From: Chrysemys picta bellii
Lineage: Eukaryota
Direction: 5' to 3'
Assembly: GCF_011386835.1 (NCBI RefSeq)
Contig: NC_088801.1
Location: forward strand, 77,500,001 to 77,564,000
Length of the DNA: 64,000 nt
Both the position numbers and the translations under genes were made by a program. The notes below the pieces were generated by a model, which was not told where the DNA came from, ran no database searches, and worked only from the letters and a program-made list of their open reading frames with translations. Below, piece after piece: positions 5,325-37,519 of the stretch. Every line of letters starts with the position of its first letter. The stretch's first letter is position 1.

Positions 5325-6239
5325 GTACAAGGGGGATGTCGTGGTGGGCATCTGCTATAGACAACCGGACCAGGAAGATGCAGTAGATGAGGCTTTCTTC
5401 AGGCAACTGACAGAAGTTTCCAGATCACAGGCCCTGGTTCTCATGAGGCATATCAATCACCCTGACATCTGCTGGGAGAGCAATACAGCAGTGTACAGAC
5501 AATCCAGGAAGTTTTTGGAGAGTGTTGGGGACAACTTCCTGGTGCAAGTGCTGGAGGAACCTACTAGAGGCCGTGCTCCTCTTGACCTGCTACTCACAAC
5601 AGGGAAGAATTGGTAGGACAAGTAGAAGTGGGTAGCAACCTGGATAGCAGTGACCATGAGATGGTCGAGTTCAGGATCCTGACACAAGGAAGAAAGGAGA
5701 GCAGCATAATATGGACCCTGGACTTCAGAAAAGCAGACTTTGACTCCCTCAGGGAACAGATGGGCAGGATCCCTGCTTTGAGCAGGGGATTGGACTACAT
5801 GACCTCTTGAGGTCTCTTCCAACCCTAATATTCTATGATCTCCTGGGAAGCTAATATATGGGGGGAAAGGAGTCCAGGAGAGCTGGCTGTATTTTAAAGA
5901 AGGAGGGCGCAGGAACAAGGGTGGTTCCAAAGAGGATGGAGCTCGGCTGTTCTCAGTGGTGGCAGATGACAGAGCAAGAAGCGATGGTCTCAAGTTGCAG
6001 TGGGGGAGGTCTCAGTTGGATATTAGGAAACACTATTTTACTAGGAGGGTGGTAAAGCACTGGAATGGTGGGTTACCTAAGGAGATGGTGAAATCTCCTT
6101 CCTTAGAGGTTTTTAAGGTCTGGCTTGACAAAGCCCTGGCTGGGATGATTTAGTTGGGGTTGGTCCTGCTTTGAGCAGGGGTTGGACTAGATGACCTCTT
6201 GAGGTCTCTTCCAACCCTAATCTTCTAAGATTCTATGAT
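5325..6239 (+). mobile_element. Rearranged CR1: endonuclease fragment, inserted CR1 tail, large internal deletion and 3' end
   Basis: ORF 5341-5616 (VVGICYRQPDQE..FFRQL..LVLM...NHPDICWESNTA) is CR1 APE. 5918-6239 is the CR1 RT end and UTR ending TTCTAAGATTCTATGA. The central RT is absent. Confidence 0.9.
5772..5839 (+). mobile_element. Short CR1 3'-tail insertion nested in CR1 ORF2
   Basis: cctgctttgagcagggg..ttccaaccctaatattctatga interrupts the contiguous CR1 coding text ggcaggatccc|ctgggaagctaatat, with a TSD-like GATCCC / GATCTCC. Confidence 0.75.
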
Positions 6240-11290: not shown

Positions 11291-12399
11291 GCTGAGGCCC
11301 ATGGGATCTGTGAATGGGTGGCATCTCTGGAGATCAGGCCCAAGATGTCTTGGCTCAGGCGCCTGGAGTTAATGGATGCCCTTTAGCATATGGGCATTTT
11401 TGCAACAGTTTTCTGACCTGTGCAAGCCCAGGAGGGTCGTTGCCTGCCTCCCTGCCAGGTGGTGCCTGCCGATCAGGTGAAGGAGACTGAGATTTTAGAT
11501 TTTACAGAGCACTCCCACCATTGTTATGGCGGGCCAGCCCTACTGGGAGAGCCACATCAGGAGAGCTGGTGGAAACAGGGCAGCGGGTGGCTGACGGCCC
11601 TTTCCCCGCCGCGTTGTTTAACCCTGTTCAGAGCAGGCCGGTGCGCCATGCCCACCGGCATCCTGTCTGTGGTAGCACTCCTCCCAGCGGAGAGCGTGAG
11701 CAGGACGCCCTGGGGTATGCAGTACTGCAGGCGTTGCCAGCACTAGGATTGCACTTGTCCTGGTGGAGAGCAAAGAGCAGCACCGAGTCACCTGGCAAGG
11801 GGTGGCTCTGTACCACTGCAGAGTTAGTCGGCCGGTGCTGCTGGTGCAGTGTGGCCCTTCCAGAATGCCTCTGCGGGCCCAAATCTTTCTTCCTTGGGAG
11901 TGACGGCGGCTTCTGCCATGTGCTGTGCCCGAGTTCTCTGCCCTGTGTGGGGCTGGGCGTGCTGTCCCAGCCCCCGGGCCAGTCTGCACCTTGAGAACGG
12001 TGGCGGCAGGCTGGCCCCGCTTGCGTGTGAGCCCAAGGAACAGGGCCTGGGTGTTCTGCGCTGGGGACTGAGTTTTAGCTTGTGGTTGCCCCCGACGTTC
12101 CTACACAGTGTGCAGCAGAGAGAAATGGCCGCAGGTTTGTTACCCTCTAGGAATCTGGACAGCCAAATGTGGTGCCAGAAATAATGGAAGAGAACAGCAA
12201 ATTGAGTTGGACGCCATCCTTGTATAGAAGCATAACGGACGGCTCCAAGAACAATATATACCTGGCGTCTGGCAGTGCCTAGAGGTTCCCGCTGAGATAA
12301 GGTCCCAAGGCTGCTGGGCACTGCATAGACAGTGAGAGAAAGAGAGAGAGGCCTGACCCTGAAGAGAAGATAGACAATGCTGTTTTCTTCCTGCTCTGT

Positions 12400-12470
12400 G
12401 TTTCCATTTTACAGATGGGGAGACTGAGGCCTGGTGCCAGGAACAGAGCTCTGAGCTCCTGGGTCCCAGA
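12400..12470 (-). mobile_element. MIR/CORE-SINE fragment
   Basis: ccattttacagatggggagactgaggc is the CORE motif. Confidence 0.6.
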
Positions 12471-12824
12471 GCTGTCCTTTCACCACGAGCCCAGCCGTAC
12501 TCTTACAAGGCTCTGCAGTGGGTGAGCCAGAGAACTGAGCTGCGCCGTGGGCGTTGTCCATTCAGCGATGAGAGCTGGGGTATTGCATTGTCTGGTGCGG
12601 TTATAACAGGGAGTCTCACTGTAGAAGCTCAGTGTCTGGTTTAGAGTGTGAAGAGCAGCATGATGGAAAGGAAACGTGATCCCTGTCTTGGTCGAGCTGG
12701 GGGCTGGAGTATTTCTGGTGTGTACATACTCTTGGGCAGTAGAGTGAGCGGAGCCCTGGGGCTTGTCATGCAGATCTCCATGGCTGATCTTTGGTGCTGG
12801 AGGCTGCCTAAGGAACACAGCAGG

Positions 12825-13550
12825 GCACGTGCGAAGGTGGCTGTGTGGTGAGGGGAGGCGCCGGCGGGGAGCGTGTGAGGGTGGCTGTGTGGTGAGGGGG
12901 GGCGCCGGTGGGGAGTGTGTGAGGGTGGCTGTGTGGTGGTGGGGGCGCTGGCGAGGCGTGGCGTGTGTGAGGGTGGCTGTGTGGTGAGAGGGGGCGCATG
13001 CGGGGCACGTGCGAGGATGGCTGTGTGGTGAGAGACACCGGCGGGGCGCATGCGAGGGTGGCTGTGTGGTGAGGGAGGGCGCCGGCGGGGCGCATGCGCG
13101 AGGGTGGCTGTGTGGTGGTGGGGGCGCTGGCGAGGCGTGGCGTGTGTGAGGGTGGCTGTGTGGTGGGGGGGCGCGTGCGAGGGTGGCTGTGTGGTGAGGC
13201 AGGGCGCCGGCAGGGCGCGTGCGAGGGTGGCTGTGTGGTGGTGGGGGCACTAGCGAGGCGTGGCGTGTGTGGTGAGAGACACGGGCGGGGCGCGTGCAAG
13301 GGTGGCTGTGTGGTGAGGCGGGGCGCGTGCGAGGGTGGCTGTGTGGTGAGGGGGGCGCCGGCGGGGCGTGTGTGAGGGTGGTTGTGTGGTGAGGGGGGCG
13401 CGTGCAAGGGTGGCTGTGTGGTGAGGCGGGGCGCGTGCGAGGGTGGCTGTGTGGTGAGGGGGGCGCCGGCGGGGCGTGTGTGAGGGTGGTTGTGTGGTGA
13501 GGGGGGCGCGTGCAAGGGTGGCTGTGTGGTGAGGGGGGCTCTGTGGTGAG
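12825..13550 (+). repeat. GC-rich, G-strand-biased minisatellite
   Basis: About 20 variant units built on the core GAGGGTGGCTGTGTGGTG plus a GC-rich spacer (e.g. AGGGGGCGCCGGCGGGGCGCGTGC). Confidence 0.93.
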
Positions 13551-14179
13551 AGTCTTGCTCTGTTTCGCTGAGCCTGCTGCGGTCTCTGCTGGCAGTGGGG
13601 AACGTGAGGGCACGTGCCAAGTCCTGAGCCTCAGAGCCCTCTGTTGTTTGTTCTCACACCGCCGTGTTTCCGTGTCAGGGACCAGACGGGGGGAATGGGC
13701 GGCTCCTCGCCAGCAGGCTCCGAGACTGAGCTGAGGGAGCAGACCAGGGCCTGCCAGAAAGGGGGTCTCCCCTCGAGAGAGCTAGAGTTTGGCAGCTGCT
13801 GCTTCCTCCCTCTCCCCCAGATCATCCAAATATTATGCAGGTTTGAGTCCAGCTGGGAGCTGGAAGTTGACCGACTCGGCAGCAGAGAAAGGGTCGTGCG
13901 CAGGAACCCTGCTGGACGGGCTCAGGGGGGTTCTGAAGGGTCCTCTGACAAGCTGGTAAAGTCCACCTGTGAGAGGCGGGAGTAGCTGCAGTACCCGTCC
14001 TCCCCTTTTGTGTGCGCTCTGGCAGGGCCCTTATAAAACCCAACCACCCAGCGTCCTCATGCAGACGGTCCCTGCGTGCCTCCCGGAGCAGGGGGCTTGG
14101 CTTCGGCATCAAGGTGCGCTCTGGGTCAGCCACAAGTGAGTTGGCTTGAGAGGGGAAGGATAATGCCCTGCGCTACAGG

Positions 14180-27310: not shown

Positions 27311-28401
27311 GGAATGTCAGGCTCCCCACAAGTGGGTGCTATCCCTCTGGACCCAGGACCACTTGTAGGATGAGGGTCTGAACTGCAGTGCCCAGACTCA
27401 TGGGATCTCTCTCCTGATCTGAGGCCTCTTCAGGCTACCGTAACGTTAAAGAATTCCTGCTCTTCCTTGGCTTCCTGCTGACACGTTTTCCTCTGAACAT
27501 CTGTCAGCTGGGAATTGAGCTCCGAATATTGACATTCCACTTGACTTGTTACAGTAGTGCCTGCGGCTCCGGTCTGGGCCCTTGCCCTAAAGCATTCTAC
27601 AGACACACCCTGCTCAAAGAACAGCATGTCTGAGTACAATGCCACAGAGGACAGCAATGACCTGCGGGCGCTAGTGGCCTACAAAGGCTCTGTCACGTTG
27701 CCAAGCCCCAAATCAATAGAGTCCCTTTGTTAGATGCTGCTTATATTGGCTCTACTCTTGGCAAAGCCCGGGGCTTCCTGCTGGAGTTGAAGGTACCTCT
27801 CTCTGTTACTCTATAAACCTGGTCTGGAGGGGTTAGCATTCGCCTGTGCTAATTCACATCAGGCTAAAGAAAAGGCATAGAGCTGGTTAGCCTAGAGAGG
27901 CATGCTGCTATTAAAGATTTGTCACTGTTATGTAAAATGAGGGGGAAAGGGAAGTGGGATGGCTTTGTGCTTCTTTTCGGTCTGTAGTAACTGGTTGTCT
28001 TTGGCCTCTCGCCTCACTCTCATGTAGCCGGCCATATAAAGTGCTCCAGGCCTCCTCACTCAGTGCCCAGTACCATCTGTGTTAACGCTGCCCCACATTG
28101 CATGTTGGTTTTCCCTGCCTTTCCATGTCATTAACAGAGAAGTCAATTAGTAATTGATTTATTTCCCTAGTTCCATTAGAGAGAAGTAATCCAATATTCC
28201 ATGCATCCTACCCGTCAGCAACTGAACACGTTCCCAACCCACTCCTTCCCCCGCCCCTATTGCTGCCGCCCTCTCAGGCAGTCTGATAACGTGGAATGTT
28301 TGAAGAGTCTGGGTTTTTCCGGTAAGATCCGGTGGGCCAAAGAAAAACTGAGACCAGGGCTGACTTTCTTAGCTGACCCATTTTCAATTGACAAGATCAG
28401 A

Positions 28402-30645
28402 TTTAAAATTTTTATTAAAGCTAATGTTAAAAAAATTATATCGTACATAGGTTGGGAAAAGAGTGTCTGTACATCTGGGTATAGTGCTTGGACTATCCAC
28501 TAATACAAAGTTTGTTTTTAAAGTCATATGATACATGCAGCACATAATCAGCAATAATCCAAATTTAGGTGAATAGATTTAACAATACAGTTTAGATATT
28601 AGAATGCGACTACTCGGCTACATCACTCATGAAAAGTTGTAGAGAGATTTGGCTGTGGAAAGCAAAATATATCAGCAAGTGGAGATTGTCCCTCAGTAAT
28701 TGAGAATTAGGATAGGTTGCCCATTTAGAGGGGGGGAAAAAACAGTCCATCAAGAAAGTATTTGAATTACTTTCCGGTCTGCACTTCTCATCGGCACTCC
28801 GGCTCACTCCTCCTGATATTGCCAATGTCCAGTGATGTATGTAGTTGTCCCTCGACTACCTGATGGCACCCGACACCGTGAGTTGCATCAGTCAAGCGTA
28901 GTGTTGACCGATTCCGCGTTCTCTCAGCAGTTGCTCGTTACCGGGGTCCCATGCGCCTAAGGCTCCGACAGTCAGTGCATGTGTCTGGACCTGGGAACCC
29001 TTAACTCTCAAGATGTCGGCCAGAGGGGCATATTTCTCTACCTTTCGAGCTCGGGCATCGTGAAAAGCCGGGTTCCTGTTCTCTAATGGCACTGTGTGAC
29101 GTCCACCATGATGATCTTCTTCCAGTCCTTGGTGATGACTATGTCCGGTCGCAGTTGGCTGTCGGTTCCAGGGATGGCTGAGTTTATGGCAACCTTCCCT
29201 ATGGGTGGCGGGATGGCTCTGGCCAGGCGATCTTGGATGGTGTTGTGTCGCAGCTGCCAAGCTCTCGAATGGGGCTTGCAGCTACTCAGGATGTGGGGTA
29301 GCATCTCGTTGGCATAGCCACACTCCCTGCATCGTTTGTCCCGATTCCCGTGGTGGAAGGCTCCATTCAGGGGGACACAGTTGAGCTGGGCCCTGTGGAT
29401 GAACCTCCAGTCAGCAAATCAGGTGAAGCTGTCCCCGGGAAGGAAGTGGTTGCTGGCGTTCCACGTGCACGTCACCTCAAAGGCCTTGCCCTGGTCTGGC
29501 TTCCGTTTCAGGTGTTCCACGTATTGGCAGCAGATGGGATCCTTCAGGGTCCTCTCCAGCATGGTTCTAGCTCTCGGAGTGATGATAGTGTGATCTGTAT
29601 TCTTCACCTGTGACACCAGGGCTCCCAGCTCCTGGCATTCCTCTCACCATGTCCGGTGGCAGCTGATACACTTCTCCAGTAGTTGCATAGCATTGCAGGC
29701 AGGCGTCCAGAGCGAAGCAAAGTCTCCCCTGTCTCTTCCAAATTCACCTTCCAGAGAGCCGCTCAGGTGGGTGGTGACATCTTGGTTGAAGGGGGTCCTG
29801 GCAATTTGCATCTTGACGCATCCTGCAGAGCACTCTCCGATGTTCCTCACCATGGCGTCTGGACACGTCAGAAGGCGTGAGTGATCATGGCAACATCGCA
29901 CAGATCACCCATACGAGGGACGTCGGCGCCGCCCTGCCTGTGCAAGATGTACACCAGTTCATTGCTGGCCCTCTGGGGAAGAAACATCTACTACTTCACC
30001 AGCTGCCGGATGGTATTGTCTGCCTTGTTGAGAGGTACCTTCACCACGGCAGATCCCCTCAGGACGAATGAGATATGGGGGATCAGGAAGGTGTTCAAGG
30101 CGTTGATCTTTTGCCATGGTGCCAATAGGGAGGAGTTGATCCTGGCCACAGTTCGTAGGATCTCCGCGATGGTATCCTCAGGTGTCTGCTGGATGCAGAA
30201 ACCCGTCGGTGTGCCAAGTTGATGGTCTGCTTGCCTGTCGTCGAGGAAGATCATGGGTTCACCCTGGATCTGAAAAGACGTCGCCTGGACTGAATCCTTT
30301 CTACTGCCATCGATATGCAGGGATGCACACTTCCTGGCATTGAAGTGGAGTCCCATCCAGTTGGCAGCTTGGCTGGTGATGTCAAGCATTTGTTCAAGAC
30401 TCTCAGGGTTGTCTGCAATCAGGACCAGGTCATCTGTGTTAGGCCAGGATATTCACTCTGTTGTCGTATAGATCGAAATAGCTGGAGATCGCTCGAATGA
30501 GCGGATCCATGGCTGAGTTGAAAACGATGGGGTTCGGGGGGCAGCCTTGCTTCATGCCACTATGGAATTTTGGGTGTCTCTCCCTCCATGAAGCGCATGG
30601 TGGTGGTGCAGCCTTCATACAGGTCCCGGACCAGTTGGAGACAGT
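28402..30645 (-). mobile_element. Utopia/NeSL-like RLE non-LTR retrotransposon, 5'-truncated and frameshifted
   Basis: Minus frames give RT (GMKQGCP; LDITSQAANWMGLHFNARKCASLHIDG; LAPWQKINALNTFLIP), a CCHC knuckle (C..C..ANEMLPHILSSCKPH) and a PD..D restriction-like endonuclease (LRPDIVIT..KKIIMVDVT..ENR..ARKVEKYAPLAD). The ORF ends ~28803, followed by an AT-rich 3' UTR ending AATAAAAATTTTAAA. Confidence 0.88.
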
Positions 30646-30649
30646 TTTT

Positions 30650-31015
30650 TCTCTCTGTGTTGATGACTCACTGATTTACCTCTCTTTTCAGGATCTGTCG
30701 TTCTCTCTCCAGACTCAAATCTCAGCCTGCCTTTGACATCTCCTTGTGGATGTCCAGCTGTCAACTAAAACATAACGTGGCTACATCCCAGCTCCTTCTC
30801 CTCACCCCCTTTCTCTGTCACGGTGGAGAGCACCACTGTCCTCCCTGTCACTTCACCCATAATCTCAGCTCTAGTTTTTGACTCATCGCTCTCTTTCGAA
30901 ACAACACCCACACGTCAATCTTGCTGCTTCTTCCTGTGCTAAAACCTCTGAGATCTGACCGTTCCTGGCTGCCCTCACTGCCAGAAATTTTCTTGTCTAA
31001 GCCCTGAGCATTGTT
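30650..31015 (+). mobile_element. L2 LINE RT fragment
   Basis: Translates as DDSLIYLSFQDLSFSLQTQISACL..DISLWMSS.QLK, then FSVTVESTTVLPV, matching L2 ORF2 (YADDSQIYLS..ISACLSDIS.WMS...LKLN). Confidence 0.7.
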
Positions 31016-31634
31016 ACGTTCTTGGGATGGTTCTTATGCATAAGTTAGTGATTTGTACTCTCAACTCCATCCAGCTCCAGTTTTTTGCCTGGGAATATAG
31101 TGAGGTATTGATCGCCTTAACTCAATGGAAAGCGAAGAGATTGCTGAACAATCAAATTGGCTCTTGCATTAATTCTATTACTGCTCTAGAAAAGCTGTGT
31201 ACACACTGATTTAAACTGCTTTTCCATGGTTTAAAAAAGGTGTGCCTGTGTATGTATCTGTTTTCATTTTCCTCTTTAATTGCAGTAATTACTTTGGCCC
31301 AAGGCACATCTTGGGGATTAATGATCTGCTGAAGTTCTTCGAGTGATTGCTCATGACTATTCCACAATAGTTATGCATGCGCGCCACGTGCACCAGTGCC
31401 GGAAGTTTTTCCCCTAGCAGTACCCGTAGCGACCCCTCTATGGTGTGGTATAAAGGGCGCTGTGCGCTCCCCCCTCCCTCAGTTCCTCCTTGCTGCCAGT
31501 GAAGGTGCTTCGGAACTGCTCTGCTCCAGCTTTGCTGTAGCTCGTCCCCGAAACTGCTGGTTCGTTCAGTGTGTGGTACCTGTAGTTAGTTTAGTTAGTT
31601 TAGTTTAGCTAGAGTGCCCGGGCCGGGGCAAGCC

Positions 31635-33991
31635 CCGTGTCCTGGGTTTTAAGTAGTGCGACACTTGTAGGCGATCTGTGCCACTGAGTGATCCGCACGC
31701 AGACTGTCTATGCTGTCTGGGGGAAACCCATCTCAGCGATCGCTGCAAGATTTTCAAGTTGTTTAAGCCTCGGACCAAGAGAGAAAGGGACATTAGGCTC
31801 CGGGCTGTCGTGTTGGAGTCTACGCTGACCCTGGCTCTGGTGCGCCGCTCCGAGTCGGTAACTGGGCACCGCAGTGTCGGTGCGCGGTGACCCTCCGGTG
31901 CCATCGACTAGTCGGCACTTCTCCCCAGCCACAGGGTACGCCAAGAAGGCTAGGAAGAGGCCTTCTTTGCCACGGCACTGGAGTAAACCCGGGACAGAGG
32001 CTAGACCCACGTCGGGCAGTCCTCTAGGCCTCCAACTCAAGTCGAGCGGAGTAACGCGGCCTATTCGGAGCAGGCCTCCCCGGATGTCCGGATGCCCTCC
32101 ACACCGGAGGCCCTGCAGGCGGCCCAGGGTGTTATGTCCATGCCGGTACCGGGAGCACTGCCGATGTCAGCCCCGCACTCCAGAGGCAAGCCACCGCTGG
32201 GATCTCCGCAGTCGCCCCTGGCTCGATACCGGTCTCGGTTGAGGGAATGTTCCTGATGCCATTCGCTGCCCAGTGGCCGTTCAGGGCAAAGTCCTCATGG
32301 ATTGCCCTCGACGCCCACCAGGTGTCTGGTTGGGTTCCATCCGACTGAGACTCTCGACACCGCTCCGCCTCCAGGAGCGGACACCGACGGGATTAAGGCA
32401 GACATCGCCAAGGGTCCTCGTCTCGGAGGGGCTATCGCAGCCAGTCACGGCACGAACGTTGACGTCATTCCCGTTCGTCGTCCCGCTCCAGGACCCCATC
32501 ACGGCACCGCCTCCGCAGCCCTGGGCATCGATTGCCATCATCTCGCCATCGTGGGTCCGACCGCCAGAGCCGATCGCAAAGCAGCTGTTACTGACGGTAC
32601 CGGTCCTCCATGTCGGGATCGCGGTACCATGGTTGGCATCGCTCCCGGCACCACCGCTCCTCCCGTCCAGGGACAGCAGCAGGTTGTATGTCAGCCCGGC
32701 CTCCCTTTGTAGTCATCCATCGATAGACCAGGCCAGCCAGGCCAAACAGCCGGCTCCACTGGTGCCACAGGAGGTGCAGTGGCACCAGACCCTGTGGCCG
32801 GCCCAATGGTACCAGTGGGCACCGTGGCCCCCAACGCAGCCCCCAGTGGGGGCTCGCTCGGTGGGCAGAGCCTCAGAAGGACCATCGGCCTCCCTCTCCA
32901 GACCTCCGAAGAAGGAATCGGTGGGACGTACATCCTTGGCACCGTGTCCAGAGAATGACCTGGGTGTCGACCGGCACCGGAGGGTCCACCACCTAAGTAC
33001 CGCACCAGCCTCCTCACCCTCCACGGATGAGGCGATTATGGCCCCTCCGTCCTGCAGGAGGACTTTAGGGCCCACCAAGAACTCTTAAAAAGGGTGGCAT
33101 CAAGCCTCCACCTCCAAGCAGAGGAGATGGAGGAGCCCTCGGACTCCCTGTTTAATGTGCTGTCCTCCTCGGCACCGGGCAGGGTAGCCTTGCCTCTCCA
33201 TGAAGGGGTGGTGAAAATTTCAAATGCCCTGTGAAAAACCCTGGTCTCATTGGCCCCCATCTCTAAGAGAGTGGAACGCAAGTATTTTGTACCCGCCAAG
33301 GAACATGAATACTTATACACCCACCCTGCTCCTAACTCCCTGGTGGTCGAGTCGGTCAACCACAGTGAACGGCAGGGCCAACCAGCTCCTACCCCAAAAA
33401 ATAAAGAATCAAGGCGTCCGGACTCTTTTGGAAGGAAAACTTATTCATCCTCGAGCTTCCAGTTTATGGGTGGCGAACCACCAGGCTCTCCTGGGCCGGC
33501 GTGAGTTCAATCTGTGGGGCTCCCTGCCCAATTTCGAGGACTCCCTCCAGGAGGGCGACAGGAAGGAGTTCAAAGCTCTGGTGGAGGAGGGCAACTTTGC
33601 AGGCGGCTTCGGATGCAGCGGACACGGCCGCGCACTCCATGGCCTCCGCGGTGTCCATGAGAAGGGCGTCGTGGTTCCTGCTCTCTGGGCTGTCCAGCGA
33701 GGCGCAGACCTCCCGTTTGACGGCAAAACCCTGTCTGCGGAACAAACGGATACAAAGCTGCATGGCCTGAAAGCCTCCCGCACGACTCTCCAGACTCTGA
33801 GTCTCTATGTTCCGGCTCCAGCTAAGCCTAAGTTCAAGCCACAGCCGACTCCCGCTCAGGCCACCCACCCAAAATACGAGACCGCTTATAAGAAGTCGCT
33901 GGACTATAAGAGATGCCCACAGAGGCAGTCTTGGCCTGCCCCCGAGCCTGGGTCCTCCAAGAGCAAGCAGGCAGGGAAAAGGCGGTTTTGA
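31635..33991 (+). pseudogene. DIRS gag-like ORF1 remnant (N-terminal Cys/His motif, Pro-rich linker, LAP2alpha-like domain)
   Basis: C-x2-C..DPHADCLCCLGETHLSDRCKIF near 31650-31800; DFRAHQELLKRVASSLHLQAEEMEEPSDSLFNVL near 33060-33200. Multiple stops and frameshifts. Confidence 0.75.
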
Positions 33992-34254
33992 CAGGAAGCC
34001 CGGGAGCGCCCTGCCAGTTCTCATCAGGGATCCACCCTCAATAAAGCTTCCCTTCTCCAATCGGTTGTGTGCTTTCCTTCCGGAGTGATCGCAGTTGACC
34101 TCGGACCGATGGGTCCTCAACACCATCTCCCGGGCTACACCCTCCAGTTTTCTTCCTCCCCACCCAACCATCCCCCGCCCCCATCCCTCCTGGTGGACCC
34201 CTCGCACGAGGCTCTGCTCGAGCAGGAGGTGGGCAGCTCCTGGGCTTAGGAGCG

Positions 34255-34850
34255 GTGGAAGCAGTACCTGGGGAGTTCAAGGGCAAGGGGTACTACTCCC
34301 GCTATTTCCTTATCCCGAAGGCCAAAGGGGGGTTCAGGCCCATCTTGGTTCAGGCCTCGCAGGTCCAGCACATGGTGAAGCTCAAGTTCTGCATGGTCTC
34401 CCTGGCCTCCGTCATCACCTCCCTGGATCCCGGGGACTGGTATGCCGCCCTCGATTTGCAGGATGCGTACTTCCACATTCATATATTCGAGGGGCACTGA
34501 TGCTTCCTCCATTTCATGGTGGGGCAGGAACACAATTTACGGTCCTCCTGTTTGGCCTGTCCACTGCTCCCAGGGTATTCACGAAATGTATGTCAGAGGT
34601 GGCAACCTATCTCAGGGGCCAAGGGGTCCAGAACTTCCCCTATCTGGATGACTGGTTGGTCAAGGGCAGCTCCCGGTTGCAGGTGTGGGATCACGTGGCG
34701 CGCCTTCTGTCCACATGTACCACTTTGGGCCTGTTGGTAAACAACACCAGGTCCACATTAGTCCCGGTTAAATGCATAGAGTTTATCGGGGCAGTCCCGG
34801 ATGCCTTGTCGGCCAGAGCCTCCCTCCCACTGGACAGGTTCGAGACCCTG
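34255..34850 (+). pseudogene. DIRS reverse transcriptase remnant
   Basis: ORFs 34255-34500 and 34095-34883 carry RT motifs (FGLSTAPRVFTKCM, FPYLDDWLV, FIGA). Confidence 0.85.
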
Positions 34851-35631
34851 TGCAGGGCCACACGGTTTTCTCCCGTGCTATGACTGGCTGATTCCTTACG
34901 GGAAGAGGCAATCTAACCCCTTATGTTAGGCCCCCTGTCCCGCAGTGGGACCTAAACCTGGTGTTGGCCTATCTCACGGGTCCCCGTTTGAGCCACTAGC
35001 CACGTGCTCCTGGTCACACCTCTCGTGGAAGGTGGCCTTCCTGGTTGCGATCACGTCGGCTAGATGGGTCTCGGAGCTCAGGGCCCTGACCTCCGAGCCC
35101 CTGTTGATGGTGTTCATAAAGATAAGGTCCAGCTCCGCCCACACCTTTCGTTTCTTCCGAAGGTGGTCTCCGCCTATGACATGGATCAGGACATTTTTCT
35201 GCCGGTCCTCTGCTCCAAGCCCCATGCATCCAGTGAGGAGCACCGCCTCCACGCGCTGGATGTGAGACGGGCTCTGGCTTTCTACGCGGAGCGGACTAGG
35301 CCGTTCAGAAAGTCCTCAACTGTTCATCGCCTCGGCCGAGCACATAAAAGGTTGGCCGATCTATACTCAGCGGCTCTCCAACTGGATCACCTCGCGCATC
35401 CGTACCTGTTATGACCTGGCGGGAATCCCGCCGCCACCAATTGTGAAGGCGCACTTGACTCGGGCGCAGGCCTCGTCGCTTGCCTTTTTGGCACATGTCC
35501 CCATTCAGGACATTCGTAGGGCTGCCACGTGGTCTTCGGTTCACCCGTTCACCTCGCACTATGTGATTGTCTCCCAAACCAGGGATGACGCCGGGTTCGG
35601 CAGGGCTGTGCTCCGTCCCGAGAATTTGTGA
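34851..35631 (+). pseudogene. DIRS tyrosine recombinase remnant (N-terminus missing)
   Basis: PVPQWDLNLVL; LSWKVAFLVAITSARWVSELRAL; FLPKVVS; LDVRRAL; AHLTRAQASS..AATWSSVHPFTSHY (H-x-x-R, W and catalytic Y positions). Confidence 0.85.
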
Positions 35632-35660
35632 ACTCCTACCCACCTCCAACAGATATAGCT

Positions 35661-35755
35661 TGGAATACACATGAGCAATCACTCGAAGAAGAAAAGACAG
35701 TTACCTTTTCCGTAACTGGTGTTCTTCGAGATGTGTTGCTCATGTCTATTCCACA
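35661..35755 (+). other. DIRS internal complementary region (ICR)
   Basis: ggaatacacatgagcaatcactcgaagaa is complementary to the left terminus (31335-31365). The following gttacc..gttcttcgagatgtgttgctcatgtctattccaca is complementary to the right terminus. Confidence 0.88.
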
Positions 35756-37519
35756 TCCCACCCTCCTTCCCCTCTGTCGGAGTTGTCTGGCAAGAAGGAA
35801 CTGAGGGTGTGGGGAGCGTGCAGCTCCCCTTATACCGCGCCAGGCAGGCGCCACTCCAGGGGTTGCTAGGGGCTCCCCTATAGGTACTGCAGGGGAAAAA
35901 CTTCCGGCATCGGTGCACGTGACGAGCACGCACACCTACTGTGGAATAGACATGAGCAACACCTCTCGAAGTAAAAGACAGTTCCCTTTTCCGTAACTGT
36001 CTTTTACTTCCCCTCAGTTGTTGCTTGGGTGTTGCCAACCAGTCATCAAGTCCCAGGAAATGCCCTGTGCGCTCTCAGTGGTTGTGGCTTAAATTCTCTT
36101 GGTTTTTCAGTGAGCAGGTTCAAGTACTTTGCAGTCACAATTCCCAGCTGTGTGGGTGCCTCTGTTAGAGCCCCACAGCAGGACTGGGATCCCACAGGAC
36201 CCACTGCCATAATCACAGGAGAGGGTAAAATGTATTTTGTTGTGGGCAGGATGGAGTGGGCAAAAAAAAAACAGATTGCAGGAATTTGCAGGAAAACACT
36301 AAATACCTCGTCAGTTTACCAAGAGTAGCCGATTTGGGAAATTGCTAATTATTGTGTTTGAGCTTCTCTTTTCTATCCGTGTTTATCTCCCTCACTACAA
36401 ATCCGGTGTAGTGCACCAGCTCAAGTCAGGGCAGCGAATCACACTCAGAGGTTTTGTTTTTCTGATGCGCTCTAAAGTCGGCGGGGGGGGGTATGAAGGT
36501 TTTAAGTCTTGCACTTAAGGGAGGGATAGAAGGAGATTTGATGTCTATTATAACGAGTTGAAGTTTTGTTTTATGTGGTTTAAGCAAGATTTGTTTGATT
36601 CTTTTAGTGGTAAAAATTGTGTCTGAATTCTGTAATATGTTAACCGAATGTGGGGTTTTTCAGTAGCATGGTGGGATCTCTCTCTCTCTCGTGGGATGTA
36701 AGGTTTTTGCAGGTGGGAATGGAATAAAAATGCAAGAAACAATATGGGAGCGGGTGGGAGTGGGGATTGCGGGGAGTGGAGGGGTTAAAAAATAGGCCTG
36801 TGCAAGGCTCTACCTCCTTTCTAACTGCCTAACAAAAGAGATGGACTCTCTTTCTTTGTTTGTGGAGGAGCTGATGGCAGGAATGTTGCTCTCAGCGATG
36901 GAGGGGCGGTTATTTCCACAAGAGGCTTTCCTCTACCAACCCTCCTTGTCCGAGAGGGACGGAATTAATGAGACTCAATCTCTTAGTTGTTACGATTGAA
37001 CTCCTCTCTCATTGTAATGTCAGTCAAAGGCTTGGTAGCCCAGGCTGTCTTGGCACAACTGGAGGGAGGGTGGTACTTGCAATTCTGCTATCTCAAGAAG
37101 TCAGGCTTAATCCAGGTGTTTTTCTGCTGTAGAAGTCCTGGTACTGGTTTATGCTGGATTCTATCCAGCAAGCAGCTATGTAATCATTGTACAGAGCAGG
37201 TGTTGGAAATGAGCGTTCTATGTGAGACACAAGGAATATATTTCATACAGTACTCAGTGTTCGATATTCCCCCACAAAAAAGCTAGAAAAGAAAAAATCC
37301 TGCTCAGCTCACTGTTGATATCCAGAACAGTGCCAATGCTAACGGCATGTGAGATTCATTAAAAGGCAAGTTTAGTATAGCGTTAATTGCCTCCATGCCA
37401 TAATTGTGATCCTTTTGTTTTAAATTAGGAAAAAGACTTGTATACAGGGGCCCCATAAAATCTAATCACCCGCGGCCCACAGGAGAGTTAATCCGGCCCT
37501 GTGTCTACATGGAAATAAA

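Follow-up and report, generated by a model that had tools for sequence, protein, structure and literature searches.

A dead turtle retrotransposon assigned to Utopia borders a U2 snRNA-like sequence outside any U2 gene

The 64-kb window (the whole 64,000-nucleotide stretch of DNA analyzed here) carries a dead, 5'-truncated non-LTR retrotransposon of the type with a restriction-like endonuclease (RLE). The element lies on the minus strand, extends from 28402 to approximately 30850, and is thus ~2.45 kb long (Table 1). On this strand its parts follow one another in the order reverse transcriptase (RT), zinc finger, and RLE. All of the reading frames are broken, and the pieces were searched separately, with no frame repaired or joined. 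Two RT pieces, 30442-30675 and 29994-30452, match Pfam RVT_1 (E = 2.5e-4 and 8.7e-5, respectively). In the zinc-finger/RLE region, the motifs CRxCG..ETLPH..C, RPD..., IxDVT, and K..KY agree with the consensus of an alignment of 25 long relatives (alignment A1). When related proteins were compared with the window by tblastn, coverage ran from 30640 (P0003) or 30570 (P0016) down to 28826. The aligned residues of P0016, a full-length protein, are 432-1018 of 1121. Because this alignment begins at residue 432, the N-terminal third of the protein is missing from the copy, whose 3' UTR is ~425 nt long. No further copies of the element were found within the 64-kb window.

Table 1. Coordinates of the retrotransposon copy, its parts, and its flanks within the window.
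Feature	Position	Strand	Basis
Host DNA, single-copy, 3' of the element (lower plus-strand coordinates)	27900..28379	.	Single-contig depth, four runs
3' flank TCTGATCTTGTCAATTGAAAAT, resembling U2 nt 39-60	28380..28401	-	17/22; top 22-mer match in window, both strands
TCTG, U2 nt 39-42; part of the flank also present in most paralogous copies	28398..28401	-	Loose ends of contigs
Conserved Utopia 3'-terminal motif TTTTTTAACATTAGCTTTAATAAAAATTTTAAA	28402..28434	-	Alignment A2; top match of metagenome tail consensus
3' UTR, ~425 nt	28402..28825	-	End of tblastn matches (P0003/P0016) at 28826; depth profile
C-terminal CCHC zinc finger and PD-(D/E)xK endonuclease, frameshifted	28826..29418	-	Pieces 29086-29418 and 28895-29281
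RT (QGCP..LFN motif through mutated YADD box, thumb) and linker, several stops/frameshifts	29422..30675	-	Pfam RVT_1; tblastn with P0003 and P0016
Degenerate upstream RT part up to the 5' truncation (~30850, approximate)	30676..30850	-	Depth back to single-copy in bin 30848-30981
Host DNA, single-copy, 5' of the element, up to the next repeat	30851..31334	.	Depth; bridging contigs

The extent and the age of the copy were evaluated with Logan contigs from four sequencing runs (four organisms), which were placed on 27900-31900. In all four runs, depth is that of single-copy DNA as far as 28301, and it returns to that level at 30848-31249. In between, there are thousands of contigs at 80-99% identity, densest over the 3' UTR, which is the part of the element most abundant among the contigs. 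The depth limits thus delineate a copy of the length given above, 5'-truncated near 30850 and with single-copy DNA on both sides. The 3' junction is bridged by an X12 contig that covers 27901-28426 with 16 differences, and the 5' end is bridged by orthologous contigs of X4, X9, and X12, which reach from 30537 to between 31029 and 31409. Since contigs of other organisms bridge the junctions, at least four organisms share it at this position, and the insertion is old.

Other repeats are present in the same stretch. A second, different repeat begins at 31335, where many loose contig ends occur in all four runs, and occupies 31335-36050 of the window. It includes an RVT_1 match on the plus strand (34095-34883), and similar sequences occur in inverted orientation near 31396-31608 and 35639-35935. 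As 484 nt of single-copy DNA separate this repeat from the minus-strand element, the two insertions are independent. A weak RT-like match on the minus strand at 1000-1392 (residues 384-523 of P0016, 25% identity, E = 4e-5, one stop codon) probably represents what is left of another non-LTR element. Two stretches of the window, 12001-14000 and 32001-36000, are GC-rich (0.57-0.63, versus 0.45-0.55 in the rest).

We then examined the 3' junction. On the minus strand, the element ends in ...AATAAAAATTTTAAA, with its last base at 28402; the strand reads ...TTAGCTTTAATAAAAATTTTAAA up to this position and continues with TCTGATCTTGTCAATTGAAAAT at 28401-28380. Seventeen of these 22 bases are identical to nucleotides 39-60 of U2 snRNA. 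The U2 22-mer used in this comparison is the one given in the first-pass annotation, and it also flanks the elements that Kojima and Jurka (2015; PMC4640811) show in their S1 Fig. The same paper documents that Utopia flanks begin at U2 nucleotide 39, as the annotation had stated. Across both strands of the window (~128,000 positions), this junction is the single place that matches the 22-mer at 16/22 or better, and the runner-up matches reach 15/22, at three places. A 17/22 match is expected with a probability of 2.7e-7 per position (Poisson-binomial), or at ~0.03 places per window when both strands are counted. Given that the match is unique in the window and so improbable at any one position, the resemblance of the flank to U2 is real and not a product of chance.

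The resemblance ends past these 22 bases. The 5' half of U2 is absent from the 5' side, where the top match is 11/20 and at background level. Rfam gave no U2 match above the gathering score anywhere in the window, and around the junction (28150-28650) there was none at E ≤ 10 either. This locus, then, is no U2 gene. The first-pass annotation had described an element that ends next to a U2-like tract beginning at the junction itself, similarity that stops after this tract, a 5' flank unlike U2, and an insertion outside any U2 gene, and all of these observations are confirmed. We did not identify a target-site duplication: the 22-mer has no second copy in the window at up to three mismatches, and it has no 7-mer in common with the 5' junction region. 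Recognizable target-site duplications are rare at non-U2 insertions of reptile Utopia (PMC4640811), and their absence here is thus no argument against membership in that group.

Copies at other loci show how much of the 22 bases belongs to the element's family-wide 3' end. The commonest loose ends of paralogous contigs fall at 28398 (24 in X1, 15 in X4) and 28399 (14 in X4), and past these positions the contigs disagree with one another (agreement of 0.41-0.43). Because the paralogues mostly cease to match there, TCT or TCTG after the terminal AAA is family-wide, and the other 18 bases of the flank are specific to this locus and lie outside the 3' UTR. The first-pass annotation had itself raised the possibility that TCTGATCTT... 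was the element's own 3' UTR, which is not the case, as past the AAA the paralogues have only TCT/TCTG in common. In dispersed copies of the alligator element Utopia-1_AMi, most are followed by TCTG and then drift from U2 (PMC4640811, S1 Fig). We also compared paralogue flanks with U2 beyond TCTG, using three 30-nt consensus strings, all of them AT-rich. They agree with U2 at 13/18, ~9/18, and ~5/19 positions, the last two counted by hand, so that family-wide U2 enrichment past TCTG appears weak and suggestive at most.

Utopia is a member of the NeSL/Utopia group, whose non-LTR retrotransposons have a restriction-like endonuclease. Utopia proteins (NeSL clade) carry one to three N-terminal zinc fingers, a region lost from this copy, which is 5'-truncated inside the RT. 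A HMMER search with a 111-residue zinc-finger/RLE piece recovered 675 relatives. Among the top named relatives, the nearest come from turtles, at 66-76% identity (Macrochelys suwanniensis, Chelonia mydas, and Mauremys mutica), and these are followed by arthropod and nematode proteins at ~50%. The best ~40 of the 675 relatives score 100-285 bits, versus 21 bits for solved R2 proteins, R2 being the other RLE clade that this comparison covered. A word-index protein search with the C-terminal piece returned one Logan fragment.

The long relatives in alignment A1 were used to fetch 59 metagenome loci that encode related proteins. In at least 20 of these, a junction of the form ...TTTAA followed directly by TCTGTTCTTATCAG... 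occurs 470-820 nt past the protein match, and the element is followed by near-perfect U2 nt 39-66. The sequence before U2 nt 39 in these loci is the element tail, ...TTTAAACATTTGCTAAATAAAA(T/G)TTAA, and not U2 nt 1-38. Rfam identified U2 (RF00004) above the gathering score at the junction in eight of the nine loci submitted, the ninth (L016) being without a match at E ≤ 0.001. With an element tail directly before U2 nt 39 and U2 recognized by Rfam, these relatives are true U2-inserted Utopia elements. Some of the contigs, from termite-gut and ant-garden metagenomes (L005, L006, L008, L018, and L050), contain host-derived U2 arrays with Utopia insertions. In one of them (L008), U2 is intact at 837-1013 and interrupted by Utopia at 5802, and another (L005) has the 3' part of U2 at its start and a Utopia-U2 junction at its end.

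The zinc-finger/RLE piece of the turtle copy is 41-57% identical to these U2-flanked elements. The last 33 nt of the copy align with the metagenome tails, and the junction falls on the identical U2 nucleotide (alignment A2). A consensus of the metagenome tails (their last 32 nt), made without the window sequence and used solely as a search probe, has its top match in the window at 28450-28391 on the minus strand, with a score of 36 versus 28 for the runner-up. Identity to U2-inserted elements together with the common 3'-terminal motif indicates that the window element is Utopia, and the first-pass annotation, which had called it Utopia-like, was on the right track, also in view of the order of RT, zinc finger, and RLE.

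Placing 149 zinc-finger/RLE segments in a tree (111 columns) puts the window piece in a clade of eight (SH-aLRT 99), the named members of which are turtle proteins. U2-flanked loci are split among three lineages, which lie to either side of the midpoint, in a tree that has no outgroup and a backbone support of 76-88. The topology is consistent with assignment to Utopia rather than decisive. Aligned globally with the published end of Utopia-1_AMi, the final 70-80 nt of the copy gave a score of 39 against a null of 36 +/- 5, which is not significant. Seven 19-20-mers from S4 Fig of PMC4640811 were also used as Utopia-1_AMi probes. One gave a roughly colinear match (14/17, 53 nt off the expected distance, equaled in 2 of 200 shuffles), another a weaker match at an unknown expected position, and the rest were at background level. 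These matches are too weak to count as support.

The last ~300 nt of the 3' UTR stand out in the depth profile. Over 28436-28703, summed contig depth is 5-20 times that of the coding part in all four runs. The excess may reflect plain 5' truncation of copies, or it may come from a short, non-autonomous element with a tail taken from Utopia.

Published work provides a framework for the origin of the junction. In U2 genes, Utopia nicks the bottom strand between nucleotides 38 and 39; reptile elements cut the top strand 20 bp further on, and the insertions are accompanied by 20-bp target-site duplications (PMC4640811). The locus holds an old, dead, 5'-truncated turtle Utopia copy, which was probably inserted by target-primed reverse transcription at a single-copy site already resembling U2 nt 39-60. 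Utopia RNA would have been reverse transcribed into single-copy DNA after the bottom strand was nicked just ahead of the pre-existing U2-like sequence, the site having been picked, we infer, with the help of the 22-base resemblance present in the target before insertion. Selection may have worked through the DNA-binding parts of the element, through base pairing between the nicked target and a U2-like RNA tail, or through both. The length of the tract, 20-22 bp, would fit the 20-bp spacing of the two nicks, a correspondence that is our own reading of the published cut sites. The first-pass annotation had gone further and proposed that the RLE endonuclease itself read ~20 bp of the downstream target. 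This part of the proposal is one possibility among several, as annealing of a U2-tailed RNA to the nicked target is an alternative, and recognition may have been by the endonuclease, by the zinc fingers, or by nicked DNA pairing with U2-tailed RNA. It is conceivable, if somewhat doubtful, that dispersed turtle copies in general are still selected by a footprint of ~20 bp, with the tract ending near the second nick.

The U2-like tract could instead have been carried by the RNA. Under this explanation, which we disfavor and regard as improbable, a master copy in a U2 gene was read through, ~22 nt of U2 were copied as a tail at an unrelated nick (3' transduction), and subsequent decay brought that tail down to 17/22. 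Read-through transcripts of the relatives, which lie in U2 genes, would have exactly such a tail, and TCT(G) after the terminal AAA in most paralogues is also expected from an RNA-borne tail. Yet the decay required is large. An exact U2 tail would reach 17/22 with a probability of 0.004-0.03 at 5-8% divergence and of 0.06 at 10%, where divergence is roughly estimated from the nearest copies, at 74-76% amino-acid identity. With five of its 22 nt changed, the tract thus differs from U2 by more than decay of an exact tail leads one to expect, and this tells against an RNA-borne tail. The published crocodilian empty sites, which hold a U2-like motif before insertion (PMC4640811, S4 Fig), point in the same direction and favor a tract that was already in the target.

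A tract in the target could in turn be U2 by descent, if the element had landed in a decayed U2 pseudogene, in a U2-derived fragment, or in the scar of an earlier Utopia event. A match with its first base at nt 39, and of a length that is unusual in a chance mimic, would suit such an origin, but similarity to U2 extends neither past nt 60 nor to the 5' side, the Rfam search around the junction was blank, and the DNA on both flanks is single-copy; we consider descent from U2 very unlikely. Coincidence is hardly credible at all: the many junctions looked at in the first-pass annotation and the AT-rich composition of the tract would make a spurious match easier to find, yet one so rare for the window would have had to coincide precisely with the 3' end of an element that targets U2. 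Insertion at a pre-existing U2-like site is the most probable reading.

Comparison with characterized systems separates this copy from two other groups of non-LTR elements. It resembles R2 in being of the RLE type and in its target-primed reverse transcription, and the RT of the related protein P0003 matches solved R2 proteins at E = 1e-58. R2, however, is specific for 28S rDNA, whereas the element here has a non-28S target and many dispersed copies. Membership in R2 was rejected, as there is no rRNA in the window and the zinc-finger/RLE piece reaches just the 21 bits against R2 given above. Keno has been reported with an identical 3' flank in U2 (PMC4640811), but it encodes an AP-like endonuclease, in contrast to the C-terminal CCHC zinc finger and PD-(D/E)xK endonuclease found here. 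The C-terminal RLE rules out Keno even though the N-terminus is missing. With the strictly U2-specific Utopia elements of arthropods (represented here by metagenome contigs L004-L050), the copy shares the protein identity, the 3'-terminal motif, and the junction nucleotide described above; theirs are insertions in real U2 genes, whereas this one lies in single-copy DNA with a 22-nt resemblance to U2.

The closest counterparts are the Utopia families of reptiles, which have been described from Chrysemys picta, Chelonia mydas, and Pelodiscus sinensis (Kojima and Jurka, 2015; PMC4640811). These show weak target specificity with frequent short U2-like sequences at their junctions, a specificity termed "weakened but not completely diminished" (PMC4640811), in line with the relaxed specificity stated in the first-pass annotation, and a 2026 review repeats these points. 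If a footprint of ~20 bp were real, a logo built from the flanks of dispersed turtle copies would reveal the code by which a site-specific RLE retrotransposon with naturally relaxed specificity recognizes its target, which would be useful for retargeting R2-like insertion tools. The present copy, a clean and unusually long example at 17/22, could feed such a logo along with this genome's other copies and help to gauge what portion of the U2 site is still needed by a relaxed Utopia. Like the published elements (Utopia-1/1B/2/3_CPB, Utopia-1/2_CMy, Utopia-1_PSi, and Utopia-1_AMi; PMC4640811), it has a turtle host, the RT/zinc finger/RLE order, and a 3' end of the form ...AACAT..CT.AATAAAA.T..AA followed by TCTG. 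It also shares with them dispersal outside U2 genes, short U2-like junctions, and duplications that are mostly absent at non-U2 sites. Its tract is longer than the 9-11 nt motifs reported in PMC4640811, and nothing about it is different in kind. As the turtle families, their weak specificity, and the U2-like junctions have all been described in that paper, the finding constitutes a further example of the published behavior of reptile Utopia.
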